Source: Rebecca billardiae RCC1528
Lineage: Eukaryota > Protista > Haptophyta
NCBI GenBank assembly: GCA_965240325.2
Contig: OZ251247.1
Coordinates: 310,001-374,000 of the forward strand
Reading direction: 5' to 3'
DNA: 64,000 nt
Of this stretch, positions 909-60,955 are shown one piece after another. Made by a program: the position numbers and the translations under genes. Every line of letters starts with the position of its first letter. The stretch's first letter is position 1. The notes below the pieces were generated by a model. The model saw nothing but the letters and a program-made list of their open reading frames with translations. It was not told the DNA's origin and made no database searches.

Positions 909-2378
909 TCAGCGTTCGCTCGCGAGTTGGAGCCCGTCGATGCGAGCAGGGACGGCCCAGATATAAGCACCGGCTGGCGTGGCTGGCGGCATTGCTAGGC
1001 TCAGCCCGAGGCCGAGTGCCGCCGAGTGCGCCCCGCACGCGTACACGCTGCCGCACGCGGTGGCAAACAGCGCGTGCTGAAAGCTCAGGGCGCAGTGCAC
1101 CACGCGAGCTTGGGCTAGCGCACCGACACGCATGGGCAGCAGCGATTCGTCAAGGCCATCGTGTCCCAGCTGGCCGTCTTCGTTGTCCCCGAACGTGTGC
1201 ACGCTGCCGTCCGCGCCCAGCACCGCGCTGCAGCGGAGGCCAGCGCACGCGCGCACGATGCGCACAGCGGCGAGGGCGTCAACCCGCCTCGGCGTGAGCT
1301 GGTCGTCTGTGTCTCCGTGCCCGAGCCTGCCCTCCCCACCCGCCCCAAACGAGTGCACCCCACCCGCTGCGTCCACCACCAGGCTGTGCAACCAGCCCGC
1401 GCTCACGTTCACGGCGCGCACGCCTTCGAGCGCCTCGATGCGCCTCGGCGTGCGCTGATCCTGTTGGTTGCCGTGGCCGAGCTGGCCGTAGTAGCCCCAG
1501 CCGCACGAGTAGACGGCGCCTTGCGCAGCGAGCAGCAGCGTGTGCGCCTCGCCAGCTGCCATCCCCCCCACGCGCACGCCGTCCAGGGCCTCGATGCGCG
1601 TCGGCTCCCACCGCTTCTGAGTGTCGCCGTGGCCGAGCTGGCAGTAGTAGTTGTTGCCCCAGCTGTACGCGCAGCCGGCGGCGGTGAGCGCGAGGCTGTG
1701 GTAGTCGCCAGCGGCGATGCCCATCACCACGACGCCAGCGAGCGCCACGATCGGCTCAAACTCGCGCCGCTCCTCCGCGTCCCCCAGCCCGAGCTGGCCG
1801 GAGCCGTTGTAGCCGCAGCCGTACACGGCGCCGGCCTCGCTCAGCGCGAGCAGGTGGGCACGGCCAGCGGCCACAGCGGCTACGCGCACCGCGCTGAGCG
1901 AAGGCACGCAAGTCTGCACGCGTACTGCCCGCACGCCCGCGTGACCGATGACGAAGGGCGTTCGAGCCTCGCCCGTCCACACCCCGTCCTCCTCGTCATC
2001 CTGCTCCTCACCGCACGTGTGCAGCCCGCCCTCCGCGTCCACAAACGCGCTGAAGTCGTAGCCGGCCGCCACGGGAGGCGAGTGCGCACGCGCGAGCACG
2101 ATCACGCGCTCACGCGAGAACAGCTCCTCCGTCCAGGTGTACACGCCCGCGGGGAGCGTCGGCGGCAGCGCGCGATCGTGCCCCCGCGCGCGCACGCGCT
2201 CGCGCAGCGCGCGCTCGACCGCCGAGCGGCCGCCGGGGGCGCCGCGGAAGAGGCGCGAGGCGGCGTTCAAGCTGGCGAGGTCCACCGGCGCGTCGATATG
2301 CCCCAGGACGCGCTCGACGAGCTCCGGCGGCAGCATGTCTCCCAGCGCACGCGGCGTCTTGCAGCCGTCGCTCGTCAT
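909..2378 (-). CDS. F-box-like / RCC1-repeat beta-propeller protein, copy 1
   Basis: Intronless ORF with first ATG at 2378 (MTSDGCK). F-box-like LPPELVERVLGHIDAPVDLASLNAASRLFR is followed by RCC1 repeats (AAGxxHLLAL..GAVYGCGxNxxGQLG, YSWGxNxxxQLGHGD). Confidence 0.88.
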   Translation of the reverse strand: MTSDGCKTPRALGDMLPPELVERVLGHIDAPVDLASLNAASRLFRGAPGGRSAVERALRERVRARGHDRALPPTLPAGVYTWTEELFSRERVIVLARAHSPPVAAGYDFSAFVDAEGGLHTCGEEQDDEEDGVWTGEARTPFVIGHAGVRAVRVQTCVPSLSAVRVAAVAAGRAHLLALSEAGAVYGCGYNGSGQLGLGDAEERREFEPIVALAGVVVMGIAAGDYHSLALTAAGCAYSWGNNYYCQLGHGDTQKRWEPTRIEALDGVRVGGMAAGEAHTLLLAAQGAVYSCGWGYYGQLGHGNQQDQRTPRRIEALEGVRAVNVSAGWLHSLVVDAAGGVHSFGAGGEGRLGHGDTDDQLTPRRVDALAAVRIVRACAGLRCSAVLGADGSVHTFGDNEDGQLGHDGLDESLLPMRVGALAQARVVHCALSFQHALFATACGSVYACGAHSAALGLGLSLAMPPATPAGAYIWAVPARIDGLQLASER

Positions 2379-2460
2379 CGCGGTTGCCGGCGCGACCCGC
2401 ACCACCGATGGGGCAAGGGTGGTCGCTGGGGCAGCCGAGCCGGACTTCCGCGGCCCCCGC

Positions 2461-3592
2461 AAGGGTAGTAAGGGTGAGCAACTCCGCTGGCGACAGCCGC
2501 GGAGGTCGGTCGGGCTCTGTTTGCCCCGGCGCCCGGTGCGAGCGGAGCGGAGCGAGTACTATCAGCGGCGGAGGGCGGTGAGGCCGCGCACGGCGTGAGG
2601 CGCGACGTCGGCCGAGTCGGTCCGCAGAGGATGCGCGGCGCTCGGCCCGCTGCGCAGCAGCAGTGCGCCACACTTTGCCCCGAGCGCCGTCCTCCGCGTC
2701 GCCTCCTTCCCGCCTTGGAGCAGCACGCATGTGCGCGCCGCCACCTCGAAGGCGGCACGGGCTTGCTCGGCCGGAAGACCGCGCGCGCGTGGCGCGCGAC
2801 TTGGTCGGCTGCGCGCGCGCGCTGCCGCGGGGCAAGGTAGCGCCACTGCATGCGCGCGCCGTGCCCGCGCGAGCCTTTGCTCACGGACATCTCATGAGCG
2901 TAGTGCGCGCTTGTCTGCTTGCTCTCACGAATGGTTCGCTGTGCCTCACGCCGGCACTGTTCGGGTCGATCAGCGAGGCGTTGAGGGACATTGGACACCC
3001 AGGACGAAGGCCTAGTCTTGTGTATTCCTTCCCAGCACGAATGTAAGTGGAAGCTAAGGCTCCGCATCGATGGTAATAACACTCACGCCGCTGTCTTTTC
3101 CAGCTTCACGTCAGTCGGCAAGTTAGATGCGCAGGCAGCATTCGGCATGCGTGTGAGCTCGCACACACGTGCGCGTACACGCTCTCGCGCGGGCACGGCG
3201 CGCGCATGCGGTGGCGCTACCTTGCCCCGCGGCAGCGCGCGCGCGCAGCCGACCAAGTCGCGCGCCACGCGCGCGCGGTCTTCCGAGCAAGCCCGTGCCG
3301 CCTTCGAGGTGGCGGCGCGCACATGCGTGCTGCTCCAAGGCGGGAAGGAGGCGACGCGGAGGACGGCGCTCGGGGCAAAGTGAGGCGCACTGCTGCTGCG
3401 CAGCGGGCCGAGCGCCGCGCATCCTCTGCGGACCGACTCGGCCGACGTCGCGCCTCACGCCGTGCGCGGCCTCGCCGCCCTCCGCCGCTGATAGTACTCG
3501 CTCCGCTCCGCTCGCACCGCTCGCCGAGGCAAACAGAGCCCGACCGACCTCCGCGGCTGTCGCCAGCGGAGTTGCTCACCCTTACTACCCTT
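2461..3592. mobile_element. Non-autonomous Mutator-like (MULE/foldback) element with ~410-bp TIRs and a 9-bp TSD
   Basis: 2461-2873 is the reverse complement of 3184-3592 (termini AAGGGTAGTAAGGGTG...CACCCTTACTACCCTT). Both sides carry the direct repeat GGCCCCCGC (2452-2460 and 3593-3601). Long TIRs plus a 9-bp TSD are Mutator hallmarks. Confidence 0.85.
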
Positions 3593-4301: not shown

Positions 4302-4336
<35 letters not shown>

Positions 4337-11713: not shown

Positions 11714-13354
11714 ATGTCCCCCTCCTCGTCGTCAGCGCCGCGCGCCAGCGCGACCGACGCGCCCGCGCCGCCGCCCGCGCCCGCGCCGCCGGCGGCGAGC
11801 GCCGACGACGCGCGGCACGCGCCGCCGCCCCGGCTCGCCGACCTCTCCGCCGAGCTGCTCGAGCACATCCTCTCGCTCCTCCACGCGCCCGCCGACCTCG
11901 CCGCCGCCAACGGCGCCGCGCGCCTCTTCCGCGCCGCGCCGCCCGGCGAGCGCTCGCCGGTGGAGCGAGCGCTGCGCGCGCGCGCGCACGCGCGCGGGCA
12001 CGGCGGCGACGCGCTGCCCGACGCGCAGCCCCGCCGCTCGCGCACGTGGACGGCCGAGCTCTTTGCGCGCGAGCGAGTGCTGGCGCTCGCGGCCGCGCAC
12101 GCCGCCGCGCTCGCCGCGGGCGGCGGCGCGCGCCCGCCGGTCTTCTCGGCGTTCCTCACGGCGCCCGACGGCGCGCTGTACACGTGCGGCGAGGACGAGC
12201 ACGACGGCGGCTCGGACGACGTCGCGCTGCTCGTCGGGCAGGGCGACGTGTGCGCGCCCGCGCCGACTGCGCAGCCAGGCTGGCCCGCGCCGCCGCCGCT
12301 CGTGCCCACGCTGGTGCCGCCGCTCGGCGTGCGGCTGGTGGCGCTCTCGGCGGGGTACGCGCACCTGCTCGCGCTGAGCGAGGGCGGCAGCGCCTTCGTC
12401 TGCGGCGAGAACGGCCGCGCCCAGCTCGGCCACGCCCACCCCAGCACGCCGCGGCACGCACTCACGCCGCTCCCGCCTCCGCTCGACCGGTTTGTCGTGT
12501 GCGTCGCCGCGGGCGGCTGGCACTCGGTGGCGGTGCGCTGCGACGGGCGGGCGTACAGCTGGGGGGACAACGCGCACGGGCAGCTCGGTCGCGGCGACGC
12601 GGAGGACTTGGACGGGCCGCGCCGCGTGCGCGGCCTCGACGCCGTGCACGTGGGCGCTGCGAGCGGCGGCAACTTCCACAGCCTGCTGCTCGCGGCGGAT
12701 GGGCGCGTGTACAGCTGCGGCGGCGGCGCGCACGGGCAGCTGGGGCACGGCGACCGCGAGGAGCGGTGGGAGCCGAAGCGGGTCGAGGCGCTGTGCGGCG
12801 TGCGCGCCGCGCACGTCAGCGCGGGGCTGGCGCACTCCCTCGTCGTCGGCGCCGACGGCAGCGTGCACTCGTTCGGCGCGGGCGCGCGCGGCGCGCTCGG
12901 CCACGGCGACGAGGAGGACCGGCTCACGCCGACGCGCGTCGAGGCGCTCGCGGGCGTGGCCGCGGTGCGCGCGTGCGCGGGGCACCAGGGCAGCGTGGTG
13001 CTCGGCGCGGACGGCGGCGTGCACGCCTTCGGCGACAACTCGCTCCTCCAGCTCGGCCTGCCCGGACCGCCCGGACCGCAGCAGCTGCTCCCGGGGCGCG
13101 CGCCGCCGCTCGGCGCAGCGGGCGCCGCCGCCGCGGTCGTGGGCTGCTCGGTGCGGCAGACGCACGCGCTGTTCGCGACGGCCGACGGCGCGGCGTACTC
13201 GTGCGGGCTGCTCTCGGGCGCGCGCGGCCACGGCGTCGCGCTCGCCGCCGGCGTCAGCCACGTGGGCAACGCGGCGCGCATCGCCGAGCTGCCGCCGCTG
13301 CTGCGCGTGCGCGCGGCGCTGACGATCGATCAGTCGACAGTCGGCGCGTACTAA
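11714..13354 (+). CDS. F-box-like / RCC1-repeat protein, copy 2 (most divergent, highest-GC member)
   Basis: 546 aa. LADLSAELLEHILSLLHAPADLAAANGAARLFR is followed by RCC1 repeats (AAGGWHS..YSWGDNAHGQLG, YSCGGGAHGQLGHGD). Confidence 0.9.
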   Translation: MSPSSSSAPRASATDAPAPPPAPAPPAASADDARHAPPPRLADLSAELLEHILSLLHAPADLAAANGAARLFRAAPPGERSPVERALRARAHARGHGGDALPDAQPRRSRTWTAELFARERVLALAAAHAAALAAGGGARPPVFSAFLTAPDGALYTCGEDEHDGGSDDVALLVGQGDVCAPAPTAQPGWPAPPPLVPTLVPPLGVRLVALSAGYAHLLALSEGGSAFVCGENGRAQLGHAHPSTPRHALTPLPPPLDRFVVCVAAGGWHSVAVRCDGRAYSWGDNAHGQLGRGDAEDLDGPRRVRGLDAVHVGAASGGNFHSLLLAADGRVYSCGGGAHGQLGHGDREERWEPKRVEALCGVRAAHVSAGLAHSLVVGADGSVHSFGAGARGALGHGDEEDRLTPTRVEALAGVAAVRACAGHQGSVVLGADGGVHAFGDNSLLQLGLPGPPGPQQLLPGRAPPLGAAGAAAAVVGCSVRQTHALFATADGAAYSCGLLSGARGHGVALAAGVSHVGNAARIAELPPLLRVRAALTIDQSTVGAY

Positions 13355-13830: not shown

Positions 13831-15315
13831 ATGACGCGGCAGGCGGGCGCCGTCTGTCCCACGCTGGGCGGCATGCCGGCCGACGTGATTCAGCGCGTGA
13901 CGGCATCGATCGAGCGCGTACGCGACCTCGCCGCCGCCAACGCCGCCTCGCGCCTCTTCCGCGGCGCGCCCGGCGGGTGCTCGCCGGTCGAGCGCGCGCT
14001 GCGCGAGCGCGCGCTCGCGCGTGGCCACAAGAGCGCGCTGCCGCCGACGCTGCCCGCGGGCGTGTGCACGTGGACGGAGGAGCTTTTCGCGCGCGAGCGC
14101 GTGCTCGCCTGTGCTCGCGCGCATGCGGCCGTCGTCGCGGCCGGCAGCGGCTTCAGCGCGTTTGTGGACGCGGAGGGCGGGCTGCACACGTGCGGCGAGG
14201 AGGAGGAGGCGGACGAGGTCACCAGGCAGCTGACGGGCGAGTATCTAGCACACGCGGCAATCGGCCACTCGGGCATGCATTCGGTGTGCGTGCCCACGCA
14301 CATCGCCTCGCTCAGCGCAGTGCGCGTGGTCGCTGTGGCCGCTAGCCACCACCACCTGGTCGCGCTGAGCGAGGCCGGCGCCGTGTACGGCTGCGGCAAC
14401 AACGAGAACGGCCAGCTCGGGCTGGGGGACGCGGAGGAGCGGCACGAGTTTGAGCCGATCGTGGCGCTCGTTGGCGTCGTGGTGATGGGCATCGCCGCGG
14501 GTGACTACCACAGCCTCGCGCTCACCGCCGCTGGGTGCGCGTACAGCTGGGGCTGCAACAGCTGCGGCCAGCTTGGCCACGGCGACAGGAATGAGCGGTG
14601 GGAGCCGACGCGCATCGAGGCGCCGGACGGCGTGCGCATCGGCGGAGTGGCGGCTGGGCAATCGCACACGCTACTGCTCTCTGCACATGGCGTGGTCTAT
14701 TCGTGCGGTGACGGCTTCCAAGGCCAGCTCGGCCACGGCGACCAGCAGCAGCAGCACACGCCGAGGCGCATCGAGGCGCTCGCGTGCGTGCGCACCGTGC
14801 ACGTGAGCGCGGGTTGCCGGCACAGCCTGGCGGTGGACGCGGAGGGTGGCGTGCGCTCGTTTGGAGAGGGGTACGGAGGCTGCCTCGGCCATGGTGACCA
14901 GGCGTGGTGTCTGCTGCCCAAGCGCATCGAGGCATTGGCGGGCGTGCGCGCGATCAGCGCCCGTGCTGGCGCACTCAGCAGCGCTGTGCTGGGCGCGGAC
15001 GGCAGCGTGCACGCGTTTGGGCACAACAGCAGCGGCCGGCTGGGGCTCGACACGCCAGGGATGGACGTCTATCAGCCCACGCGCGTGGCTGCCCTTGCAC
15101 ACGCGCGCGTGGTGGAGTGCGCCTTTGGCCCCTGCCACGCGCTCTTCGCCACAGAGGCGGGTGTCGTGTACGCGTGCGGAGAGAAGTCGGCAGCGCTCGG
15201 CCTCGGGCTGAGCACAGGGGAGGATCCGATTGGGGCTGCAGACCGACCTGACCAGGCGATGCCAGTGCGCATCGAGCAGCTGCCACGCGTGCCGCCCCGC
15301 CGCCTATCCGGCTAG
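13831..15315 (+). CDS. F-box-like / RCC1-repeat protein, copy 3
   Basis: The ATG at 13831 (MTRQAGAVCPTLGGMPADVIQRV) matches the starts of copies 4 and 5. Full RCC1 repeat set. Confidence 0.88.
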   Translation: MTRQAGAVCPTLGGMPADVIQRVTASIERVRDLAAANAASRLFRGAPGGCSPVERALRERALARGHKSALPPTLPAGVCTWTEELFARERVLACARAHAAVVAAGSGFSAFVDAEGGLHTCGEEEEADEVTRQLTGEYLAHAAIGHSGMHSVCVPTHIASLSAVRVVAVAASHHHLVALSEAGAVYGCGNNENGQLGLGDAEERHEFEPIVALVGVVVMGIAAGDYHSLALTAAGCAYSWGCNSCGQLGHGDRNERWEPTRIEAPDGVRIGGVAAGQSHTLLLSAHGVVYSCGDGFQGQLGHGDQQQQHTPRRIEALACVRTVHVSAGCRHSLAVDAEGGVRSFGEGYGGCLGHGDQAWCLLPKRIEALAGVRAISARAGALSSAVLGADGSVHAFGHNSSGRLGLDTPGMDVYQPTRVAALAHARVVECAFGPCHALFATEAGVVYACGEKSAALGLGLSTGEDPIGAADRPDQAMPVRIEQLPRVPPRRLSG

Positions 15316-15617: not shown

Positions 15618-17117
15618 ATGAAGCGGCAGGCGGGCGCCGTCTGTCCCACGCTGGGCGGCATGCCGGCCGACGTGATTCAGCGCGTGGTGGCATCGACCGA
15701 GCGCGTACGTGACCTCGCCGCCGCCAACGCCACCTCGCGCCTCTTCCGCGGCGCGCCCGGCGGCCGCTCGCCGGTCGAGCACGCGCTGCGCGAGCGTGCG
15801 CGCGCTCGCGGCCACGATCACGCGCTGCCACCGACGCTGCCCGCGGGCGTGTGCACGTGGACGGAGGAGCTGTTCGCGCGCGAGCGCGTGCTCGCCTGTG
15901 CTCGTGCGCATGCGGCCGTCGTCGCGGCCGGCAGCGGCTTCAGCGCGTTTGTGGACGCGGAGGGCGGGCTGCACACGTGCGGCGAGGAGGCGGTGCTGGA
16001 GGATGAGACCGGGGAGTGGACGGGCGAGTACTCGGCGCATTCGGCTCTGGGCCATGGTGATCCCGCGACCGTGCCGACGCGCGTCGCCTCCCTCACCACG
16101 GTGCGCGTGGCAGCGGTGGCCGCTGGCCGCTACCACCTGCTCGCGCTGAGCGAGGCCGGCGCCGTGTACAGCTGCGGCGACAACACGTTCGGCCAGCTGG
16201 GGCGGGACTGCGTGGTGGAGTGGCGTTCAGTTGCTCCGGTGAGCTCTCCGTTGAGCGCCTTGGGACGTGCCGCCGTCGTGTGCATCGCTGCTGGTGGGTG
16301 GCACAGCTTCGCGCTCACCGCCGCTGGGTGCGCGTACAGCTGGGGCTGCAACAGCTGCGGCCAGCTCGGCCACGGCGACAAGAAGGACCGGTGGGAGCCG
16401 GCGCGCATCGAGGCGCTGGACGGCGTGCGCGTGGGCGGGATGGCAGCTGGCGAGGAGCATACGCTGTTCCTATCTGCGCAAGGTGCTGTGTACTCGTGCG
16501 GCCTTGGCCAGTTTGGCCGGCTCGGCCACGGCGACGAGGAGGATCAGCTCAAGCCGAGGCGCATCGAGGCGCTCGCGGGCGTGCGCGCCGTGCACGTGAG
16601 CGCGGGCCACATGCACAGCCTGGTGGTGGACGTGGAGGGTGGCGTGCGCTCGTTTGGACATGGGCATTTGGGCTGCCTAGGCCACGGCCATGAGCATTCG
16701 CTGCCGCTGCCCCTGCGCATTGCCGCCCTGGCTGGCGTCACCGCCGTGCGCGCGTGCGCTGGCTTCTGCAGCAGCGCGGTGCTGGGCGCGGACGGCAGCG
16801 TGCACACGTTTGGGAACAACGAGTACGGCGAGCTGGGGCTCGACACGCCGGAGATGGACGTCGGCCAGCCCACGCGCGTGGCTGCCCTTGCCCACGCGCG
16901 TGTGCTGGATTGCGCGCTCGGCCGCAGCCACTTGCTCTTGGCCACAGAGGCGGGTGCCGTGTACGCGTGCGGAGAGAAGTCAGCCGCGCTCGGCCTCGGG
17001 CTGAGCACAGGGGAGGATCCGATTGGGGATGCGGGCGAGGGTGCAGACGCGTACTGGCCCGGCACGCCAGTGCGCATCCAGCAGCTGCCACGCGTGCTGC
17101 CCGGCATGCCGGGCTAG
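15618..17117 (+). CDS. F-box-like / RCC1-repeat protein, copy 4
   Basis: ATG at 15618 (MKRQAGAVCPTLGGMPADV). Tandem sister of copy 3. Confidence 0.88.
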   Translation: MKRQAGAVCPTLGGMPADVIQRVVASTERVRDLAAANATSRLFRGAPGGRSPVEHALRERARARGHDHALPPTLPAGVCTWTEELFARERVLACARAHAAVVAAGSGFSAFVDAEGGLHTCGEEAVLEDETGEWTGEYSAHSALGHGDPATVPTRVASLTTVRVAAVAAGRYHLLALSEAGAVYSCGDNTFGQLGRDCVVEWRSVAPVSSPLSALGRAAVVCIAAGGWHSFALTAAGCAYSWGCNSCGQLGHGDKKDRWEPARIEALDGVRVGGMAAGEEHTLFLSAQGAVYSCGLGQFGRLGHGDEEDQLKPRRIEALAGVRAVHVSAGHMHSLVVDVEGGVRSFGHGHLGCLGHGHEHSLPLPLRIAALAGVTAVRACAGFCSSAVLGADGSVHTFGNNEYGELGLDTPEMDVGQPTRVAALAHARVLDCALGRSHLLLATEAGAVYACGEKSAALGLGLSTGEDPIGDAGEGADAYWPGTPVRIQQLPRVLPGMPG

Positions 17118-21565: not shown

Positions 21566-23068
21566 ATGACGATGGCGGGGCATCAGGCGCAGGCCGTCTG
21601 CTCGCCCACGCTGGGCGGCATGCCGGACGACGTGCTCGTGCGAGTGCTGGCGTCGATCGAGCGCGTGCGTGACCTCGCCGCCGCCAACGCCACCGCGCGC
21701 CTCTTCCACGCCGCGCCGCCCGGCGGGTGCTCGGCGGTCGAGCGCGCGCTGCGCGAGCGCGCGCGCGCGCGCGGCCACGAGCGCGCGCTGCCGCCGTCGC
21801 TGCCCGCGGGCGTGTGCACGTGGACGGAGGAGCTGCTCGCGCGCGAGCGCACGCTCGCCGTCGCCCGCGCGCACGCCGCAGCCCTCGACGCCGGCAACGG
21901 CTTCAGCGCGTTTGTGGACGCGGAGGGTGGGCTGCACACGTGCGGCGAGGAGCAGGTTCGGGGCGCGGACGGCAGGCCCACGGGCGAGTACCGGGTGCAC
22001 GTGGCCGCCGGCCACCCGGGCGAGCAGGACGTGCGCGTGCCCACGCACGTGGCCTCGCTCGGCGCGGTGCGCGTCGTCGCGGTGGCCGCCGGCGAGGCCC
22101 ACCTGCTTGCGCTGAGCGAGGCCGGCGCCGTGTACGGCTGCGGCGACAACGAGTGCGGCCAGCTGGGCGTGGGCGACACGGAGCAGCGGCGGCCGTTCGC
22201 TGCGGTGGACGCATTGCGGCCCGAGGCGGTCTTGGGCATCGCGGCAGGCTTCCACTACAGCCTCGCGCTCACCGCCGCTGGCTGTGCGTATAGCTGGGGC
22301 TGGAACGGGGACGGCCAGCTCGGCCACGGCGACACGAAGGACCGGTGGGAGCCGACGCGCGTCGAGGCGCTGGACGGCGTGCGCGTGGGCGGCGTGGCGG
22401 CTGGGCATGCGCACGCGTTGCTGGTGTCGAGCAGCGGGGCCGTGTACTCGTGCGGCCGTGGCCGCTCGGGCCGCCTCGGCCACGGCGACGAGGAGGATCA
22501 GCGCACGCCGAGGCGCATCGAGGCGCTTGCGGGCGTGCGCGCCGTGCACGTGAGCGCAGGACACATGCACAGCCTGGTGGTGGACAGCGAGGGGGCGGTG
22601 TACTCGTTCGGGCTGGGCGCGGGCGGCGCCCTCGGCCACGGCGACTTGGCGTCGCAGCTGCTGCCCAAGCCCATCGCCGCGCTGGCGGGCGTGCGCGCCG
22701 TGCGCGCGTGCGCGGGCATGGGCAGCAGCGCGGTGCTGGGCGCGGACGGCAGCGCGCACGCGTTTGGAAGCAACGGCCATGGCCAGCTCGGGCTGGGGCC
22801 CGCCTTCCGCTCGATCGAGCTGCTCCCGGTGCGCGCGGCGGCGCTCGCGCGCGCGCGCGTGCGCGAGTGCGCGCTCGGCTTCCGCCACACGCTCTTCGCC
22901 ACGGCGGACGGCGCCGCGCACGCGTGCGGCAAGCGCTCGGCCGCGCTCGGGCTCGGGCTGCGCGCGGGCGCGGACGGGGGCGCGGGCCACGCGGGCGCGT
23001 GCCGAGACACGCTCACGCGCGTCGAGCAGCTGCCGCGCGTGCTGCCTTGCGACGAGCCCGGCCGGTGA
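21566..23068 (+). CDS. F-box-like / RCC1-repeat protein, copy 5
   Basis: ATG at 21566 (MTMAGHQAQAVCSPTLGGMPDDVLVRVL). Full RCC1 repeat set. Confidence 0.88.
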   Translation: MTMAGHQAQAVCSPTLGGMPDDVLVRVLASIERVRDLAAANATARLFHAAPPGGCSAVERALRERARARGHERALPPSLPAGVCTWTEELLARERTLAVARAHAAALDAGNGFSAFVDAEGGLHTCGEEQVRGADGRPTGEYRVHVAAGHPGEQDVRVPTHVASLGAVRVVAVAAGEAHLLALSEAGAVYGCGDNECGQLGVGDTEQRRPFAAVDALRPEAVLGIAAGFHYSLALTAAGCAYSWGWNGDGQLGHGDTKDRWEPTRVEALDGVRVGGVAAGHAHALLVSSSGAVYSCGRGRSGRLGHGDEEDQRTPRRIEALAGVRAVHVSAGHMHSLVVDSEGAVYSFGLGAGGALGHGDLASQLLPKPIAALAGVRAVRACAGMGSSAVLGADGSAHAFGSNGHGQLGLGPAFRSIELLPVRAAALARARVRECALGFRHTLFATADGAAHACGKRSAALGLGLRAGADGGAGHAGACRDTLTRVEQLPRVLPCDEPGR

Positions 23069-24657: not shown

Positions 24658-24697
<40 letters not shown>

Positions 24698-25518: not shown

Positions 25519-25579
<61 letters not shown>

Positions 25580-32515: not shown

Positions 32516-32723
32516 TATTTCTGAACTACACGGATCAGGAGACCCGCGTCGTCCTACCTGTGTCGTTAAATCATAGAATGGGTCCGGACTCAGAGACAGA
32601 GACTAGTCACTAGAGCAGAGTATACCGATAGGTGGCTCGGAGCCAGTGATGCATATCGTCATTCATGCAATGCGCGTTCGTCAGTGGTCAGCCGGCGTCA
32701 CGCAGGCATGGACAGGGCATACC

Positions 32724-33802: not shown

Positions 33803-33957
33803 ACCGCCCTTGGTCGTGGCCCGCTCCACGGGAATCTTTCTTCAGCCCTTGAGAATCAGGCCGCGGCCCGCGGGCCGACCTGTCCACCTTCGTCCACCTC
33901 CTGGTCAACTCATCATCCCTTCCCGGCTTCCCCTCGTCTTCTCTCGCGCTCGGCTCC

Positions 33958-39393: not shown

Positions 39394-39605
39394 CCGAGTC
39401 GGAGTGGCCTTGCTTTGAGTGCGTCGTGGCCCGCTCCACGGGAATCTTTCTTCAGCCCGTGGGAATCAGACCGCGCGCGGCCGGGGCCCGGGGCGAGCCC
39501 CCGCGGGCCGCGGCCCGCGGGCCGGACCTGTCCACCTTCGTCCACCTCCTGATCAACTCATCATCCCTTCCCGGCTTCCCCTCGTCTTCTCTGCCGCTCG
39601 GCTCG

Positions 39606-41069
39606 ATGGCCACGGCACGGACGCGCACGCCGCCCCTCGCGCTCGACGGCCTGTCGCACGACGAGCTGACACGAGTCGTCACATGCCTTGCGTTGCCCGA
39701 CCTTGCCGCCGCCAACGCCACCTCACGCCTCTTCCGCGGCGCGCCCGGCGGCCGCTCGCCGGTCGAGCACGCGCTGCGCGCGCGCGCGCGCGCGCGCGGG
39801 CACGAGCGGCTGCTGCCGGCGTCGCTGCCTTCGGACGTGCGCACGTGGACAGAGGAGCTGTTTGTGCGCGAGCGCGTGCTCGAGCTCGCACGCGCGCACG
39901 CATCCCCGGTCGCGTGCGGCGCTGGGTTCAGCGCGTTTGCGGACGCGGAGGGCGGGCTGCACACGTGCGGCGAGGAGGAGGTGCTGGAGGAGGAGACCGG
40001 GGAGTGGATGGGCGAGTGTCGAGTGCACGCAGCCACCGGCCACTCGGGCATGCCGTCAGTGCGCGTGCCCACGCGCGTGGCCTCGCTCGGCGCGGTGCGC
40101 GTCGTCGCGGTGGCCGCCGGCGACTCCCACCTGCTCGCGCTGAGCGACGCCGGCACCGTGTACGCCTGCGGCGGCAACCGCTGGGGCCAGCTCGGGCTGG
40201 GGGACAAGGAGAAGCGGTACTCGTTCGCACTCATCGAGCTACCCGCGATTGAGCTCGTCGTCGCGATCGCCGCGGGCTTCAGCCGCAGCCTCGCGCTCAC
40301 CGCAGCTGGGTGCGCCTACAGCTGGGGCTACAACAGTGACGGCCAGCTTGGCCACGGTGACACAAAGGACCGGTGCGAGCCGACGCGCATCGAGGCGCTG
40401 GACGGCGTGCGCGTGGGCGGCGTGGCCGCGGGTGGTCGACACACGCTACTGCTCTCTGCCAACGGCGCCGTCTACTCGTGCGGCCATGGCAAGTTTGGCC
40501 TGCTCGGCCACGGCGACGAGCAGGAGCAGTGCACGCCGAGGCGCATCGAGGCGCTCGCGGGCGTGCGCGCCGTGCACGTGAGTGCGGGCGGTGCGCACAG
40601 CCTGGTGGTGGACAGCGAGGGGGCGGTATACTCGTTTGGGAGCGGTGGGCATGGCGTGCTCGGGCACGGACACGCGCTCGAGCAGCGCACGCCCAGGCGG
40701 ATCGACTCCCTAGCGGGTGTGAGCATCGTGCGCGCGTGTGCAGGCACAGGCAGCAGCGCGGTGCTGGGTGCTGACGGCAGCGTGCACGCGTTTGGGAACA
40801 ACAGCTACGGCGAGCCGGGGATTCGCGGGAACGAGGATGCCAACCCCCCTACGCGCGTGGATGCCCTTGCTCAAGCGCGCGTGGTGCGCTGTGCCATGGG
40901 CCGCTCCCACTCGCTGTTTGTGAGTGCGGACGGCAGCGTGTACGCGTGCGGCTCGCGCTCGGCCGCGCTCGGCCTCGGCATGAGCGCGGGTGATGAGCAA
41001 GACGAGCTCACCCTGCGGGTTGACACGCCCACGTGCGTCGAGACGGCGTGGCGTGCGCGCGTCTGCTGA
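39606..41069 (+). CDS. F-box-like / RCC1-repeat protein, copy 9
   Basis: The ATG at 39606 (MATARTRTPPLALDGLSHDEL) matches copy 7. 487 aa. Confidence 0.9.
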   Translation: MATARTRTPPLALDGLSHDELTRVVTCLALPDLAAANATSRLFRGAPGGRSPVEHALRARARARGHERLLPASLPSDVRTWTEELFVRERVLELARAHASPVACGAGFSAFADAEGGLHTCGEEEVLEEETGEWMGECRVHAATGHSGMPSVRVPTRVASLGAVRVVAVAAGDSHLLALSDAGTVYACGGNRWGQLGLGDKEKRYSFALIELPAIELVVAIAAGFSRSLALTAAGCAYSWGYNSDGQLGHGDTKDRCEPTRIEALDGVRVGGVAAGGRHTLLLSANGAVYSCGHGKFGLLGHGDEQEQCTPRRIEALAGVRAVHVSAGGAHSLVVDSEGAVYSFGSGGHGVLGHGHALEQRTPRRIDSLAGVSIVRACAGTGSSAVLGADGSVHAFGNNSYGEPGIRGNEDANPPTRVDALAQARVVRCAMGRSHSLFVSADGSVYACGSRSAALGLGMSAGDEQDELTLRVDTPTCVETAWRARVC

Positions 41070-41971
41070 CGCCGCCTGCCTCCGAGGGGCGAGGGCAGGC
41101 AGCCGGAGCCGCTGCGGGCCTGCCTGCGGCGGGGAGTGTGGAGGTGCGCGGGGGGGAGGGGGGGGGGGGGGAGGGGGAGCCGGCGCGACGGCACGCGCGC
41201 CGCGCGGCTGGGTCCTGCCTCCAGGATGCGCCGAGTCCGCGGGGCGGCGTGCGGCGTGTGTGCACTCTAAGCAGCTCGGACTGGCGGCCGTCGCGGCGTC
41301 GCGGCCGGCAGCGCTGACTGCTCAGGCCGCGCGAGCAGCCGAGCGATGTCGGTCAGAGTCAGCCATCATGTGGGCGTCATCATCGGTAGTCGTCGATCTA
41401 CTCCGCGTCTGTCTCCGATCATCAGCAGATATGACGACGATATTGTCACCCTGCCATCACGGTGTCAATGATGACCGTACAGTGGCGGCGCAATAACTCT
41501 CAGATCGGAGTACGACGTACTCTACGCAGTCAGTCTAGTGATGACGTCTACTATCATCATCTAATATCAGACTCATCAGCCGGGGCCTGCTCCCGCCGCC
41601 GTCGGTTGCGCTTGCGTGTCGTCAATGGTGCCCGGGCCGCGTAGTGGTCTGCCAGCAGCATCAGTTATTATATCCTCTGCAGCCGTGGAGCGGGCATCCA
41701 GCGCCACGGCTGCGGAGCCCGAGAAGCCGATGATGGCGACCTGACGGCGGAGATCTTTGGCCGGTAACAACTAACATGCAGAAAAATTAAAGCCGGACGG
41801 CGCGGACGGACTGTTTTATGTCCTGCGGGACCAGCTCGTTGCTGACAGGCCTATTTCGCCTAATGGTCCGGGTAGAGGGCGATCGATGGAGCTGATGAGC
41901 GGCGCTGGCGCCTGGCGTTCGTGTCGTTCTCTTAGACAATCAGGTATTGTACCAATAACCCCACATTATAT

Positions 41972-50906: not shown

Positions 50907-52400
50907 TCAGCAGGCACGGGCACGCCACCCCGTCTCGACGCACGTGGGCGTGTCAACCCGCTGGGTGGGCTCGTCTTGCTCGGCCGCGCTCATGCCGAGG
51001 CCGAGCGCAGCCGAGCGCTTGCCGCACGCGTACACGCGGCCGTCAGCACTCACAAACAGCGAGTGGAAGGAGCGCATGGCACAGTGCACCACGCGCGCGT
51101 GGGCGAGGGCAGCCACGCGCGTGGGCGTGGGCACAGTGAGGCATGTCTTCTCAAGCCCGAGCTGGCCGTACTCGTTGTCCCCGAACGTGTGCACGCTGCC
51201 GTCCGCGCCCAGCACCGCGCTGCTGCTGTTGCCAGCACACGCGCGCACGACGTGCACACCAGCAAGCGCCTCGATGCGCTTGGGCTTGCGCCGACCGACC
51301 AGGTCAACGCGTCCGAGCTGTCCACAAGTCCCGGCCCCGAACGAGTGCACCGCCCAATCGCTGTCCACCACCAGGCTGTGGTGGCAGCCCGCGCTCACGT
51401 GCACGGCGCGCACGCCCGCGAGCGCCTCGATGCGCCTCGGCGTGCGCTGATCCTGCACGTCGCCGTGGCCGAGCTGGCCAAGCTGGCCAATGCCACACGA
51501 GTAGACGGCGCCCCGCGTGGTGAGAAGCAGCGTGTGCTCGTGTCCTGCGGCCAAACCACCCACGCGCACGCCGTCCAGCGCCTCGATGCGCGTCGGCTCC
51601 CACCGCTCCTCCGTGTCGCCGTGGCCGAGCTGGCCGTAGTAGTTGTCGCCCCAGCTGTACGCACACCCAGCTGTGCTGAGCGCGAGGCTGTGGTTGCCTC
51701 CAGCGGCGATGCCCACCACCACGAAATCGGCCAGCGCGGCGACCGGAACGAACTCGCGCCGCTCCTGCAGGGCCCCCAGCCCAAGCTGGCTGAAGCAGTT
51801 GCTGCCGCAGCCGTACACGGCGCCGGCCTCGCTCAGCGCGAGCAGGTGCGTCCAGCCCGCCGCCACAGAGCGCACGCGCACTGCGCTGAGCGAGCTAACG
51901 TGCGTCGGCACGCGTACTCCCCGCGCGCCCACGTGGCCGATGGCGGCGGGCGGTATACGCTCGCCTGTCAGCAGCGCGGCGTTCCAGTCCAGCACCGCCT
52001 CGTCCTCGTCTAGCACCTCCTCCTCGCCGCACGTGTGCAGCCCGCCCTCCGCGTCCACAAACGCGCTGAAGCTAGCGTCGCACACGACCGAGGATGCATG
52101 CGCGCATGCGAGCTCGAGCACGCGCTCGCGCGCGAGCAGTTCCCCCGTCCACGTGCGCACGTCGGAGGGCAGCGTCGCCGGCAGCGCGTGCTCGTGCCCG
52201 CGCGCGCGCGCGCGCTCGCGCAGCGCGCGCTCGACCGCCGAGCACCCGCCGGGCGGCGCAGCGTGGAAGAGGCGCGCGGTGGCGTTCAGGCTGGCGAGAT
52301 CGCGCGGGTGTAGGAGTGACATGATGTTGTCGAGCACCTCCGGCGGCAGGTCGACGAGCGCGGGCGTCGGTTGCGCGGTGCCCATCTCGTCGGTGGCCAT
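50907..52400 (-). CDS. F-box-like / RCC1-repeat protein, copy 10
   Basis: 497 aa. LVDLPPEVLDNIMSLLHPRDLASLNATARLF is the clearest F-box consensus in the set, followed by RCC1 repeats. Confidence 0.9.
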   Translation of the reverse strand: MATDEMGTAQPTPALVDLPPEVLDNIMSLLHPRDLASLNATARLFHAAPPGGCSAVERALRERARARGHEHALPATLPSDVRTWTGELLARERVLELACAHASSVVCDASFSAFVDAEGGLHTCGEEEVLDEDEAVLDWNAALLTGERIPPAAIGHVGARGVRVPTHVSSLSAVRVRSVAAGWTHLLALSEAGAVYGCGSNCFSQLGLGALQERREFVPVAALADFVVVGIAAGGNHSLALSTAGCAYSWGDNYYGQLGHGDTEERWEPTRIEALDGVRVGGLAAGHEHTLLLTTRGAVYSCGIGQLGQLGHGDVQDQRTPRRIEALAGVRAVHVSAGCHHSLVVDSDWAVHSFGAGTCGQLGRVDLVGRRKPKRIEALAGVHVVRACAGNSSSAVLGADGSVHTFGDNEYGQLGLEKTCLTVPTPTRVAALAHARVVHCAMRSFHSLFVSADGRVYACGKRSAALGLGMSAAEQDEPTQRVDTPTCVETGWRARAC

Positions 52401-52901: not shown

Positions 52902-54371
52902 TCAGCAGACACGCGCACGCCACGCCGTCTCGACGCACGTTGGCGTGTCAATCCGCTGGGGGGGCTCGTCTCGCTCGGCCTCGCTCATGCCGAGGCCGAG
53001 CGCAGCCGAGCGCTTGCCGCACGCGTACACGCTGCCGTCCGCACTCACAAACAGCGAGTGGGACTTGCTCATGGCACAGTGCACCACGCGCGCGTGGGCG
53101 ACAGCGTTCACGCGCGTGGGAGCCTCAACGGCATCGTGGGCGTGCCCCAGCCCGAGCTGGCCGTGCCTGTTCTCCCCAAACGTGCGCACGCTGCCGTCCG
53201 CGCCCAGCACCGCGCTGCTGCCTGCGCCTGCCCACGCGTGCACGATGCGCACACCAGCGAGCGCCTCGACGCGCTTGGGCTTGCGCCGGCCGTCGGAGTC
53301 ACCATGCCCGAGCTGCCCATAACGCCCGCCCCCGAACGAGTGCGCGCCACCCTTCGCGTCCACCACCAGGCTGTGCGCGTAGCCCGTGCTCACGTGCACT
53401 GCGCGCACGCCCGCGAGCGCCTCGATGTGCCTCGGCGTGGGCTGATCCTGAGTGTCGCCGTGGCCGAGAGGGCCAGGAGAGCCCGATCCGCACGAGTAGA
53501 CGGCGCCGTGGGCAGAGAGCAGTAGCGTGTGTCGACCACCCGCGGCCACCCCGCCCACGCGCACGCCGTCCAGCGCCTCGATGCGCGCCGGCTCTCACCG
53601 GTCCTTCGTGTCGCCGTGGCCGAGCTGGCCGTAGTAGTTGCGGCCCCAGCTGTACGCACACCCAGCTGCGGTGAGCGCGAGGCTGTGGTCGCCGCCAGCC
53701 GAGATGGCGACGCCGGGTTCACTCGCGGGGAGATCGGTGAGTGCGAACGAGTGCCGCTTGTGCTTGTCCCCCAGCCCGAGCTGTCCGAAGAAGTTGTCGC
53801 CGCAGCCGTACACGGCGCCGGCCTCGCTCAGCGCGAGCAGATGGGCAATGCCAGCGGCCACAGCGACCACGCGCACCGCGCTGAGCGAGGCGACGCGCGA
53901 CGGTTGCAACACCTTCGGCGCGGCGAAGTGACCCACCGCAGCATGTGCTCGATACTCGCCCGTCCACTCCCCGCCCTCGTCCCACACCGTCTCTTCGCCG
54001 CACGTGTGCAGCCCGCCCTCCGCGTCCACAAACGCGCTGAAGCCGTCGCCAGCCGCCACGGGAGATGCGTGCGCGCATGCGAGCTCGAGCACGCGCTCGC
54101 GCACGAACAGCTCCTCCGCCCACGTGCGCACGTCGGAGGGCAGCGTCACCGGCAGCGCGTGATCGTGCCCGTGCGCGCGCGCGCGCTCGCGCAGCGCGCG
54201 CTCGACCGGCGAGCACCCGCCGGGCGGCGCGGCGTGGAAGAGGCGCGCGGTGGCGTTCAGGCTGGCGAGATTGCGCGGGTGTAGGAGTGACATGATGTTG
54301 TCGAGCACCTCTGGCGGCAGGTCGACGAGCGCGGGCGTCGGTTGTGCTGTGCCCACCTCGTCGGTGGCCAT
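52902..54371 (-). pseudogene. F-box-like / RCC1-repeat gene, copy 11, with a single in-frame TGA
   Basis: ORFs 53595-54371 and 52902-53564 are in the same frame. The sequence reads GAC CGG TGA GAG CCG where paralogues have TGG or TGC, and the rest is intact to ..AWRARVC. Confidence 0.82.
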
Positions 54372-54836: not shown

Positions 54837-56306
54837 TCAGCAGACACGCGCACGCCACGCCGCCTCGACGCAAGTGGGCGTGTCAATCCGCTGGGTGGGC
54901 TCGTCTCGCTCGGCCGCGCTCATGCCAAGGCCGAGCGCAGCCGAGCGCTTGCCGCACGCGTACACGCGGCCGTCAGCACTCACAAACAGCGAGTGGAAGC
55001 TGCGAATGGCACAGTGCACCACGCGCGCGTGGGCGAGGGCAGCCACGCGCGTGGGCGTGGGCACAGTGAGGCATGTCTTCTCAAGCCCGAGCTGGCCGTA
55101 CTCGTTGTCCCCGAACGTGTGCACGCTGCCGTCCGCGCCCAGCACCGCGCTGCTGCTGTTGCCAGCACACGCGCGCACGACGTGCACACCAGCAAGCGCC
55201 TCGATGCGCTTGGGCTTGCGCCGACCGACCAGGTCAACGCGTCCGAGCTGTCCACAAGTCCCGGCCCCGAACGAGTGCACCGCCCAATCGCTGTCCACCA
55301 CCAGGCTGTGGTGGCAGCCCGCGCTCACGTGCACGGCGCGCACGCCCGCGAGCGCCTCGATGCGCCTCGGCGTGCGCTGATCCTGCACGTCGCCGTGGCC
55401 GAGCTGGCCAAAGTAGCCCCAGCCGCACGAGTAGACGGCGCCGTGCGCAGAGAGAAGCAGCGTGTGGACGTGACCCGCGGCCACGCCACCAAATCGCACC
55501 CCGTCCAGCGCCTCGATGCGCGTCGGCTTCCACCGGTCCTTCGTGTCGCCGTGGCCGAGCTGGCCGTAGTGGTTGCAGCCCCAGCTGTGCACACACCCAG
55601 CGGCGGTGAGCGCGAGGCTGTGGCCGCCGCCCGCGGCGATCGCGACGACGCGCTCAATCGCGGGTAGCTCGGTAAGTGCGAACGAGTGCCGCTTCTCCTT
55701 GTCCCCCAGCCCGAGCTGGCCCCAGTCGTTGTAGCCGCAGCCGTACACGGCGCCGGCCTCGCTGAGCGCGAGCAGGTGGTAATGGCCAGCGGCCACAGAG
55801 CACACGCGCACACCGCTGAGGGAGGTGACGTGCATCGGCACACGCACTGAAAACATGCCCGAGTGCCCGGTGGCCGCCAGCACTCGATGCGCCCACGCCC
55901 CGGCGTCCTCGTCGCGCACCTTCTCCTCGCCGCACGTGTGCAGCCCGCCCTCCGCGTCCACAAACGCGCTGAAGTTGTCACCGCACGCGACCGGGGATGC
56001 GTGAACGCATGCGAGCTCGAGCACACGCTCGCGCAGAAACAGCTCGTGTGTCCACGTGCGCACGCCGGAGGGCAGCGTCGCCGGCAGCGCATGATCGTGC
56101 CCGCGCGCGCACGCGCGGTCGCGTAGTGCGCGCTCGACCGGCGAGCACCCGCCGGATGGCGCGGCGTGGAAGAGGCGCGCGGTGGCGTTCAGGCTGGCGA
56201 GATCGCGCAGGTGTAGGAGCGAGAGAGTGCGCTCGAGCACCTCGCGCGGCAGGTCGTCGAGCGCGAGGCGAGGCGCATGCGCCTGCTGGTGTGCCCTGCT
56301 GGCCAT
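54837..56306 (-). CDS. F-box-like / RCC1-repeat protein, copy 12
   Basis: 489 aa. LDDLPREVLERTLSLLHLRDLASLNATARLF plus RCC1 repeats. Confidence 0.9.
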   Translation of the reverse strand: MASRAHQQAHAPRLALDDLPREVLERTLSLLHLRDLASLNATARLFHAAPSGGCSPVERALRDRACARGHDHALPATLPSGVRTWTHELFLRERVLELACVHASPVACGDNFSAFVDAEGGLHTCGEEKVRDEDAGAWAHRVLAATGHSGMFSVRVPMHVTSLSGVRVCSVAAGHYHLLALSEAGAVYGCGYNDWGQLGLGDKEKRHSFALTELPAIERVVAIAAGGGHSLALTAAGCVHSWGCNHYGQLGHGDTKDRWKPTRIEALDGVRFGGVAAGHVHTLLLSAHGAVYSCGWGYFGQLGHGDVQDQRTPRRIEALAGVRAVHVSAGCHHSLVVDSDWAVHSFGAGTCGQLGRVDLVGRRKPKRIEALAGVHVVRACAGNSSSAVLGADGSVHTFGDNEYGQLGLEKTCLTVPTPTRVAALAHARVVHCAIRSFHSLFVSADGRVYACGKRSAALGLGMSAAERDEPTQRIDTPTCVEAAWRARVC

Positions 56307-59218: not shown

Positions 59219-59446
59219 AAGGCATTATCAAGCCCCTTGATGAATCGGTAAATGACTACGGATGAAGTTTGGCGCCATTTGGCGCCAATTGCTGAATTGC
59301 ACACACATCAGCTGGTGGCATCGAAGTTCATTGACTAAATGACTAATAAGGAGAATCTGCATACCCCGGGTACGTCCGGGGAAGTGTTTATCAACGGGAT
59401 TGCGGGCGGGCGTCTACTGCCACAGCGAGCGCGCCGCGCATTGCCG

Positions 59447-60955
59447 TCACAACAAGCGCACCGCGCATTGCCGTTGATGGAGAGGCGGCAGCTGCTCGAT
59501 GCGCGTGGGCGCGGAGAGATCGCGCTGCGGCCAGTCGGCCGCGCTCCTGCCGTGGCCGAGCGCTGCCGAGTGCTTGCCGCACGAGTGGACGCAGCCGTCC
59601 TCCGTGGCGTGTAGCGCGTGGTCGTAGCCGAGCGCACAGCTGAGCACGCGTGCGTGCGCAGACGCGGGCACGCGCGTTGGGACGTACTCGCGGGAGCCCC
59701 CGTAGCCGAGCCCCAGCTGGCCGTACTGATTGCTCCCGAACGCGTGCACGCTGCCGTCTGCGCCCAGCACCGCGCTGCTGTAGTAGCCCGCACACGCCCT
59801 TACGGCGCGCACTGTCGACAGAGCGTCGACGCGCTTCGGCACGCTCCGATACGGACCCGCATCGTAGCCAAGAGCACCATCGCACCCACGTCCGAAGGAA
59901 TGCACGCAGCCCACTGCGCCCACCACCAGGCTGTGGTGAGCACCGGCGCTCACGTGCACGGCGCGCACGCCCGCGAGCGACTCGATGCGCCTCGGCGTGC
60001 GCTGATTCCGCTGGTCGCCGTGGCCGAGCGCGCCTCTGCCACCCGCGCCGCACGAATACACGGCGCCGCCGTGCGCAGATAGCAGCAACGTGTGCTCAGC
60101 ACCCGCCGCCACACCACCCACGCGCACGCCGTCCAGCGCCTCGATGCGCGTCGGCTCCCACCGCTCCTCCGTGTCGCCGTGGCCGAGCTGGCTGTAGTAG
60201 TTGTCGCCCCAGCTGTACGCACAGCCAGCGACGGTGAGCGCGAGGCTGTGGTGAAAGCCGGCCGTGATGCAAGCCCAAACCTCGCGCGAGGGCGCGGGCA
60301 CGAACTCGGTCGTGTGCAGCGGCGCCGGGTCCCCCAGCCCGAGCTGGCCGTTACAGTTAAGGCCGCAGCCGTACACGGCGCCGGCCTCGCTCAGCGCGAG
60401 CAGGTGGTACCGGCCTGCTGCGAGAGAGCGCACGCGCACAGCACCTAGCGAGGTGACGCGCGTGGGCACGCGCACGGCCGGAGCGTCCGGATGGCCGTTG
60501 GCCAAATGCGCCCAGTACTCGCCCGTCGGCGCCCCGTCCACCTCGTCCTCCTCCTCCAGCTCGCCGCACGTGTGCAGCCCGCCCTCCGCGTCCACAAACG
60601 CGCTGAAGCCGTCGCCGGCCGCGACGGGGCCCGCGTACGCGCACGCGAGCTCGAGCAAGCGCTCTCGCGCGAACAACTCTTCCGTCCAGCTGAGTACGCC
60701 CGCGGGCAGCATCGCTGGCAGCGCGCGCGCGTGGCCGCGCGCACACGAGCGCTCGCGCAGCGCGTGCTCGACCGCCGAGCGCTCGCCGGGCGCGCCCCGG
60801 AAGAGGCGCGAGGTGGCATTGACGGCGGCGAGGTCGAGCGACGATGAAAGCCGACGCGCGACGCGCTCGATCACCTCTGCGGGCAGGTCGCCGATCTGCA
60901 CCGCCCCCGTCGCTGAGCGCCCCGCGCCACCATTCGTGTGGTGGGCGGCCGCCAT
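59447..60955 (-). CDS. F-box-like / RCC1-repeat protein, copy 13
   Basis: 502 aa. IGDLPAEVIERVARRLSSSLDLAAVNATSRLFR plus RCC1 repeats. Confidence 0.9.
   Translation of the reverse strand: MAAAHHTNGGAGRSATGAVQIGDLPAEVIERVARRLSSSLDLAAVNATSRLFRGAPGERSAVEHALRERSCARGHARALPAMLPAGVLSWTEELFARERLLELACAYAGPVAAGDGFSAFVDAEGGLHTCGELEEEDEVDGAPTGEYWAHLANGHPDAPAVRVPTRVTSLGAVRVRSLAAGRYHLLALSEAGAVYGCGLNCNGQLGLGDPAPLHTTEFVPAPSREVWACITAGFHHSLALTVAGCAYSWGDNYYSQLGHGDTEERWEPTRIEALDGVRVGGVAAGAEHTLLLSAHGGAVYSCGAGGRGALGHGDQRNQRTPRRIESLAGVRAVHVSAGAHHSLVVGAVGCVHSFGRGCDGALGYDAGPYRSVPKRVDALSTVRAVRACAGYYSSAVLGADGSVHAFGSNQYGQLGLGYGGSREYVPTRVPASAHARVLSCALGYDHALHATEDGCVHSCGKHSAALGHGRSAADWPQRDLSAPTRIEQLPPLHQRQCAVRLL

Follow-up and report, generated by a model that had tools for sequence, protein, structure and literature searches.

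The 64,000-nucleotide (nt) window analysed here, positions 310,001-374,000 of contig OZ251247.1 from the haptophyte Rebecca billardiae RCC1528, contains an array of 13 paralogous open reading frames (ORFs) that encode predicted F-box/RCC1 proteins, in which a near-invariant beta-propeller scaffold carries hypervariable (HV) residues at the same places in every copy. We suggest that this array is a diversifying repertoire of substrate receptors of the SKP1-CUL1-F-box (SCF) type, a reading to which we assign a probability of about 0.6. Its architecture, the location of the variable residues on one face, their fast and non-neutral replacement, and the tracts of gene conversion among the copies are regarded as established.

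Constant scaffold and variable sites

The array was delimited from stop-to-stop frames read through two near-invariant nucleotide blocks. If <=3 mismatches are allowed, the blocks are found 13 and 12 times; dinucleotide-preserving shuffles lead one to expect 0.03 and 0.00 occurrences. The 13 ORFs span 909-60955, in agreement with the preliminary description of this DNA, which had been made from the letters alone and had reported 13 paralogues with shared blocks over that interval. Copy 1 lies on the minus strand, copies 2-9 on the plus strand and copies 10-13 again on the minus strand, in a window whose GC content is about 70-71%. The genes have no introns, and the proteins are 484-546 amino acids (aa) long from aligned Met starts. 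Thirteen genes is correct as a number, with one correction: 11 of the 13 are intact, whereas copy 8 is frameshifted and copy 11 has a premature TGA. That both broken copies are otherwise full length suggests recent pseudogenisation.

A MAFFT alignment of the propeller regions of the 13 copies is nearly gap-free, and in every blade invariant anchors flank variable residues that stay in register across the whole set. At the first G-x-x-H site the variable pair reads, from copy 1 to copy 13, RA, YA, HH, RY, EA, WD, CD, YG, DS, WT, IA, HY and RY; at the CG-x-N-x-x site that follows, the variable residues read YGS, EGR, NEN, DTF, DEC, HLH, KRN, DSH, GRW, SCF, DFF, YDW and LCN, and these strings reproduce exactly those first noted. 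The variable clusters number 11, and each occurs in 9-13 different forms across the array. Pairwise comparison of the copies gives differences at 12-26 (median 24) of the 27 HV positions defined by motif.

The variable residues lie on one face of an RCC1 propeller

The assignment of the scaffold to the seven-blade RCC1 propellers is certain at the level of sequence profile and predicted fold. All six copies scanned with Pfam matched RCC1/WD40_RLD (PF00415/PF25390) with E values of 1e-62 to 1e-78, as the earlier domain call would lead one to expect; over PF00415 and PF25390 taken separately, the values for these six copies run from 1e-50 to 1e-78. An AlphaFold2 model of copy 10, calculated from a 48-sequence alignment, has a mean predicted local distance difference test score (pLDDT) of 92.2 and a predicted template modelling score (pTM) of 0.91, and DSSP finds in it 28 strands in a four-per-blade pattern that corresponds to a closed seven-blade propeller. 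The best Foldseek match of the model is UVR8 (TM score 0.92-0.94, root-mean-square deviation 2.0 A), followed by the propellers of HERC2, HERC1, RPGR and RCC1; the matches of the propeller to UVR8, HERC2, RPGR and RCC1 have E values of 1e-25 to 1e-40. UVR8 is also the nearest solved protein by sequence (phmmer, E 1.7e-67). We conclude that the predicted architecture runs from an F-box-like motif through a helical linker to the RCC1 propeller, with SKP1 as the putative partner of the N-terminal part.

Two kinds of HV cluster recur from blade to blade. In the DSSP assignment of the model, the first (AG-xx-H) forms a 3-residue loop joining strands 2 and 3, and the second (G-x-N/G-xx-G) forms the start of the long loop after strand 4. 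Because the blades have an antiparallel meander topology, both loops fall on the same propeller face. Comparison with UVR8 leads to the same placement. Aligned by phmmer, the AG-xx-H pairs fall on UVR8 W233/R234, W285/R286 and W337/R338, and G-x-N/G-xx-G has its first residue opposite W94, W198, W250 and W302. Exactly those HV-aligned tryptophans lie in the UVR8 dimer interface, while the tryptophans that stand just before Gly (W92, W196, W300 and others) are buried in the sheets (PMC7455749); at positions of this second type the array proteins have a conserved W, C or F.

A site scan of alignment columns 40-530 (GY94/F3x4 likelihood on IQ-TREE trees built for each blade, with the synonymous rate set to that of the partition) gave 27 fast sites, defined by a nonsynonymous rate beta >1 at p<0.05, of which 16 are motif-defined HV positions. 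Twenty-three of the 27 are located in the same-face loops, one in an opposite-face loop and three at strand edges. The enrichment on the one face is significant by Fisher test both against the rest of the protein (2.5e-8) and against opposite-face loops (8.8e-5). The preliminary description had proposed a single variable face, and the fast sites and their alignment with UVR8 interface residues bear this out by topology and homology.

Replacement at the variable codons is fast

By pairwise Nei-Gojobori estimates the scaffold has a synonymous rate (dS) of 0.45 and a nonsynonymous rate (dN) of 0.23, and the proportion of nonsynonymous differences (pN) at HV codons is 0.615, near saturation. Pooled likelihood on per-blade trees gives a scaffold omega of 0.23. 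When the HV synonymous rate (alpha) is tied to that of the scaffold, HV beta is 2.54, with a likelihood ratio test value of 90.7. HV codons have a nucleotide diversity of 0.70, 0.63 and 0.46 at their first, second and third positions; the corresponding scaffold values are 0.18, 0.18 and 0.30.

The conserved codons that lie between HV codons are as diverse at synonymous sites as distant ones (0.246 vs 0.226; for four-fold Gly codons, 0.343 vs 0.346), which means that mutation is not locally elevated at the loops. Normal synonymous diversity beside the HV codons thus rules out local hypermutation or a mechanism like that of diversity-generating retroelements.

The contrast with the flanks persists among close relatives. 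Where the 12 codons on each side of a cluster differ at 2-7% of nucleotides, the HV residues are still 70-79% different. In two extreme cases, selected post hoc, copies 1 and 3 have 0/72 flank differences and 5 changes in three HV codons, and copies 4 and 6 have 1/75 flank differences and 5 HV changes. In nearest-neighbour comparisons the ratio of HV dN to flank dS is 4.4-4.8, or about 2.7-3.0 after a correction for codon bias, since the Nei-Gojobori method underestimates dS.

The composition of the HV positions is equally distinctive. Tyr (10.9%), Asp (10.0%), His (8.6%), Phe (6.0%) and Trp (2.9%) are set against Pro (0.6%), Val (0.3%) and almost no Ile. Aromatic residues and His together make up 28%, compared with 7% expected from base composition; Tyr is enriched 10-fold, and Pro would be expected at 12%. 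GC at the first and second HV codon positions is 0.55 and 0.46 in this 71% GC window.

As a separate observation, the HV codons of blades C and D only have a third-position GC (GC3) of 0.63-0.65, against 0.87-0.89 in their neighbours, with many T-ending codons (z = -2.9, on non-independent data). These may be young codons that are short of compositional equilibrium.

Copies 7 and 9 as a yardstick

Copies 7 and 9 are the products of a segmental duplication. The flanks of the two units are 97-98% identical, and the middle of the propeller is 74-90% identical. Non-coding divergence is p = 0.020 (21/1064) upstream and p = 0.028 in the 3' flank. Synonymous divergence is 0.031 in the N-terminus and 0.046 in blades D-F, and the proportion of synonymous differences (pS) reaches 0.22 in blades A-C. 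In blades D-F, the HV codons have a pN of 0.28: 5 of the 12 have changed, and in four of these 2-3 nucleotides are different. Replacement at HV codons between these copies is therefore about 6 times pS and 10-14 times non-coding divergence. Taken together, the rates, this yardstick and the HV composition argue for selection for change at a protein-binding surface, and against a simple relaxation of constraint.

Several other features of this pair were noted. About 1.1 kb upstream of the two copies (32664-33740 and 38209-39290) is 98% identical and includes a 207-aa ATG-initiated ORF (32665-33288) with no Pfam match, which may be a second gene of the unit. Outside HV codons, nonsynonymous changes between the pair equal or outnumber synonymous ones; the N-terminal thirds (33958-34570 vs 39606-40220) differ by 16 nonsynonymous and 4 synonymous changes, most of them in an acidic variable loop of the first blade, where sites have beta>1 and pLDDT is low. 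Copy 7 alone has a perfect 34-bp palindrome at 35250-35283, an in-frame insert that adds 10 residues at the last-blade variable loop.

Gene conversion and the origin of the differences

Per-blade codon trees are incongruent. Copies 7 and 9, for example, pair as sisters for the N-terminus and blades D-F; in blades A-C this pairing is lost, copy 9 grouping with copy 12 or copy 11 and copy 7 with copy 6. A Sawyer-type run test finds globally significant tracts between copies 10 and 12, 7 and 9, 3 and 4, and 8 and 11, together with many shorter tracts that are significant pairwise. The 406-nt identity of copies 10 and 12 is a recent gene conversion. Along with the tandem arrangement of 13 copies, the two broken members and the segmental duplication, these significant tracts are signs of turnover in the family. 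Long tracts of this kind overwrite HV codons, and HV diversity would thus decay unless it were restored or preserved.

Conversion could also be a source of the differences. In a model of cassette shuffling, the HV differences between close copies would be imported by short conversion tracts that are invisible in the invariant scaffold; the generator would be templated, and the product would still be a diversified repertoire. The mosaic structure and the many short significant tracts fit such a model, as do the copy 1/copy 3 changes that leave the flanks untouched and the copy 7/copy 9 comparison, in which 4 of the 5 changed HV codons of blades D-F differ at 2-3 nt despite only 2-3% neutral divergence. 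It is this excess of multi-nucleotide codon replacements that keeps the model alive, with donors that may lie outside the window. Within the window, however, identical cassettes move with similar flanks: pairs with identical HV cassettes have a median flank divergence of 0.062, against 0.191 for all pairs, and no in-window donor was seen for the isolated changes. Micro-conversion of cassettes alone is accordingly unsupported in the window. Shuffling would also be unable to create the underlying diversity, and we consider it unlikely as the explanation of the array.

The N-terminal module

Evidence for the F-box comes from four lines that are consistent with one another, and places it at the level of the profile, with less force than for the RCC1 propeller. 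When the N-terminal 100 residues are scanned in isolation, copy 10 matches PF12937 with 27.3 bits (cutoff 24.3), and matches are found in 8 of the 13 copies at E<=10. A profile of this module built from 42 family members has 24 matches in the PDB, 22 of which fall on the F-box of an F-box protein; these include FBXO31 (the best, E 5.6e-4), Legionella AnkB and FBXW7. A profile from the 13 array N-termini alone gave no PDB match; F-box matches appeared once homologues were added. Modelled separately (pLDDT 89), residues 1-112 form helices at 20-29, 32-41 and 43-46 plus the linker helices, and Skp1-bound F-box proteins are 9 of the top 12 Foldseek matches, with weak E values of 0.3-2. Homologues in other organisms have above-threshold PF12937/PF00646 matches at the equivalent position.

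The module is also constrained and widespread. Its omega is 0.28, and no fast sites (beta>1) occur in the F-box or the linker. At a threshold of E<=1e-3 the F-box-like motif and linker together (94 profile positions) match 736 representative clusters, and at E<=1e-10 they match 268; the full-length members are about 450-550 aa long. Neighbours of the array protein in the ESM atlas are haptophyte clusters auto-named F-box/RCC1 and chordate FBXO24 (atlas feature score 0.94). The N-terminal module is predicted to dock to SKP1/CUL1.

Points against the repertoire reading

Three sets of findings weigh against a diversifying repertoire of SCF receptors. First, the placement of the variable residues on one face holds by topology and homology, not by coordinates.

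Second, when HV codons are given a free synonymous rate of their own, alpha is 2.26, beta 2.25 and omega 0.99, which is not significant; the HV alpha is inflated here by saturation and by multi-nucleotide codon differences. A deliberately harsh correction for GC-biased fixation brings the nearest-neighbour ratio down to about 1.1-1.2, and the GC3 bias of 0.88 may lower synonymous rates. The copy 7/copy 9 synonymous rate is not below the non-coding rate, and the GC-bias objection is weakened by this. A dN/dS above 1, which the preliminary description would require of the variable sites, thus stands when they are measured against the scaffold synonymous rate or the non-coding DNA of copies 7 and 9, and fails when they are measured against their own alpha. 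These figures are the natural ground for a neutral explanation, in which the loops are an unconstrained surface that drifts, the scaffold is maintained by concerted evolution together with purifying selection, and diversity as such is not selected; positions equivalent to the HV sites are, moreover, variable across RCC1 proteins generally. Yet simple drift would have to account for an HV pN 10-14 times the non-coding divergence in copies 7 and 9, for a residue composition far from mutational expectation, and for diversity that has not eroded under long conversion tracts that overwrite HV codons. We regard relaxed constraint as distinctly improbable.

Third, the F-box is weak in each sequence taken singly. 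In full-length scans PF12937 remains below threshold (best 23.9 bits vs 24.3), most copies are under the Pfam cutoff, the Foldseek E values extend over 0.3-4, of the 47 profile positions the match covers just 1-33, and 5 copies depart from the canonical LP. The F-box called in the preliminary description is in this sense recovered at the level of the profile. If the F-box were degenerate or repurposed and had lost its binding to SKP1, and the propellers acted as stand-alone binding or regulatory proteins, these low scores would be accounted for, as would the failure of the 13-copy profile to find anything in the PDB. Against such a reading are the purifying selection on the module, its conservation in the clusters at E<=1e-10, the above-threshold homologues, and FBXO24, a protein of the same architecture that binds SKP1/CUL1/RBX1 (PMC10932545). 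We consider it quite unlikely that the array lies outside the SCF system.

A model for the array

Our preferred reading, the diversifying SCF-type repertoire, would work as follows. The genes would form a tandem family that evolves by birth and death and encodes intracellular receptors for substrates. In each protein the N-terminal F-box-like motif and helical linker would dock SKP1/CUL1 and the seven-blade propeller would bind the target. Gene conversion and duplication would hold the scaffold near identical, synonymous sites included, while diversifying selection would maintain differences at about 27-35 residues, located in the two loops that every blade has on the same face, so that each paralogue would present a unique surface. 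Bound proteins, which may be foreign, viral or fast-evolving endogenous ones, would be ubiquitinated on SCF assembly.

An immune function is a possible, candidate role for the array. In its full form, this idea would have the alga keep a germline repertoire of hypervariable SCF receptors for intracellular antiviral recognition of non-self, each face capturing a different foreign protein for ubiquitination and the set being renewed by selection and conversion between paralogues; we hold this form to be tentative and, as a whole, rather unlikely. A conflict other than pathogen defence could leave the same genomic signature. Tandem, fast-evolving F-box arrays have precedents in the plant S-locus and in Caenorhabditis (PMC11573670, PMC12951971), and the algal array might serve mating or gamete recognition, or be a toxin-antidote or hybrid-incompatibility system. 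No partner locus or mating-type context was seen within the window, although no test aimed at such a context was made, and to this self/non-self or selfish-element alternative we give only a slim chance.

Should the array proteins function as SCF receptors, the alga would possess an extensive and rapidly diversifying collection of ubiquitin-ligase adaptors on a propeller scaffold, with variable residues arranged as regularly as in engineered binders. The repertoire reading, if true, would carry the idea of adaptive recognition by F-box proteins beyond nematodes and plants into marine protists, about whose innate defences against giant viruses almost nothing is known, and would provide a natural example of a binder design with a constant scaffold and a variable face.

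Layout of the array and neighbouring sequences

Table 1. Coordinates of the array copies and related features within the 64,000-nt window.
Feature	Coordinates	Strand	Remarks
Copy 1	909..2378	-	intact, 489 aa
Copy 2	11714..13354	+	intact, 546 aa; most divergent; long N-terminal extension
Copy 3	13831..15315	+	intact, 494 aa
Copy 4	15618..17117	+	intact, 499 aa
Copy 5	21566..23068	+	intact, 500 aa
Copy 6	28188..29651	+	intact, 487 aa
Duplication unit A	32650..35740	+	upstream DNA and copy 7; partner 38195-41350
Copy 7	33958..35454	+	intact, 498 aa
Copy 8	36222..37672	+	pseudogene; 4-nt deletion near 37317 (frameshift) and 12-nt deletion, blade D loop
Duplication unit B	38195..41350	+	upstream DNA and copy 9
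Copy 9	39606..41069	+	intact, 487 aa; segmental duplicate of copy 7
Copy 10	50907..52400	-	intact, 497 aa; the modelled copy
Copy 10 propeller	residues about 105-487 (about 50940-52088)	-
Conversion tract, copies 10 and 12	51076..51481 = 55006-55411	-	406 nt identical; blades D-F; 10 HV codons
Copy 10 F-box-like motif	residues 16-47 (about 52260-52355)	-
Copy 11	52902..54371	-	in-frame TGA at 53595-53597, Trp in all others; otherwise full length
Copy 12	54837..56306	-	intact, 489 aa
Copy 13	59447..60955	-	intact, 502 aa

The C-termini divide the copies further. Copies 6-12 share a tail ending ...TPTCVETAWRARVC, with Cys as the final residue, and form one subfamily; copies 3-5 and 13 have a ...QLPRV/PPL tail instead. 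Two 300-nt stretches with 93% identity form a direct repeat, one before copy 6 (27149-27448) and the other after copy 9 (42013-42312), and may mark the edges of a bigger duplicated block.

Genes outside the family also lie within the array. ORFs at 18182-19531 (minus strand) and 49042-50502 (plus strand) comprise one resembling FAD/NAD(P)-binding oxidoreductases and one with a partial match to the actin family. The intervals 4000-10000 and 23288-26722 have a GC content of 80-83% and contain long overlapping ORFs on both strands, one of them of 1144 aa, without a Pfam match.

Among sequencing reads, no run was listed for a 5.5-kb query, and three coded runs from one sample were reached by way of the neighbouring oxidoreductase gene. 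The X1 read contigs on 50880-56400, seven in all, are short and of low depth, and uninformative for transcription or for the copy 11 stop codon.

Comparison with known systems

The joining of an F-box to an RCC1 propeller is already known, as is the concept of fast-evolving F-box receptor families, and public sets contain haptophyte proteins with the automatic annotation F-box plus RCC1. Full-text literature searches found no published description of a hypervariable F-box/RCC1 family; in dinoflagellates, RCC1 and F-box expansions are mentioned separately (PMC6517890). The novelty first suggested for the system hence applies to the hypervariable family and not to its architecture, which FBXO24 exemplifies (PMC10932545). 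Beside the nearest foreign homologue no tandem copy was seen, the neighbouring gene on its contig being unrelated. Viral contigs have generic RCC1 propellers only, at 23-34% identity and without the N-terminal module.

Mammalian FBXO24 is recovered with SKP1, CUL1 and RBX1 in co-precipitation, and a substrate that it binds is ubiquitinated through its action (PMC10932545). It has the two-domain architecture in common with the algal family, on a comparison made by atlas feature score only, but is a single conserved gene and not a diversified array. UVR8 (PDB 4D9S, 4DNW) is the closest solved structure, with interface residues that coincide with the algal HV positions, and has no F-box. A UV-B photoreceptor of the UVR8 type was considered and rejected, the GWRHT triad (W233, W285, W337) being hypervariable here and kept by no copy. 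In HERC1 and HERC2, RCC1-like domains are propellers that serve ubiquitin ligases as substrate- or partner-binding modules; these ligases are of the HECT type, single-copy and not hypervariable. The S-locus F-box (SLF) arrays of Solanaceae and Rosaceae consist of linked paralogues that jointly recognise diverse non-self proteins. Both SLF and algal genes are linked arrays of F-box paralogues, although SLF proteins have FBA/FBK-type domains and reside at a mating locus, a context not seen in the window.

The closest parallel is with the F-box families of nematodes and plants (FBXA/FBXB with FTH/FBA domains; Thomas 2006, Genome Res 16:1017), for which positive selection in the substrate-binding domain and a proposed, largely unproven immune role are described (as cited in PMC8120010). 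To that extent the algal family resembles them: it is a large tandem family with a conserved F-box and with selection concentrated in the binding domain. It differs in that the binding domain is an RCC1 propeller with two variable loops per blade, on a scaffold conserved at the nucleotide level by conversion, in a very GC-rich haptophyte host. What is new here is this combination of blade-periodic hypervariable loops, nucleotide-level scaffold conservation and an algal host.

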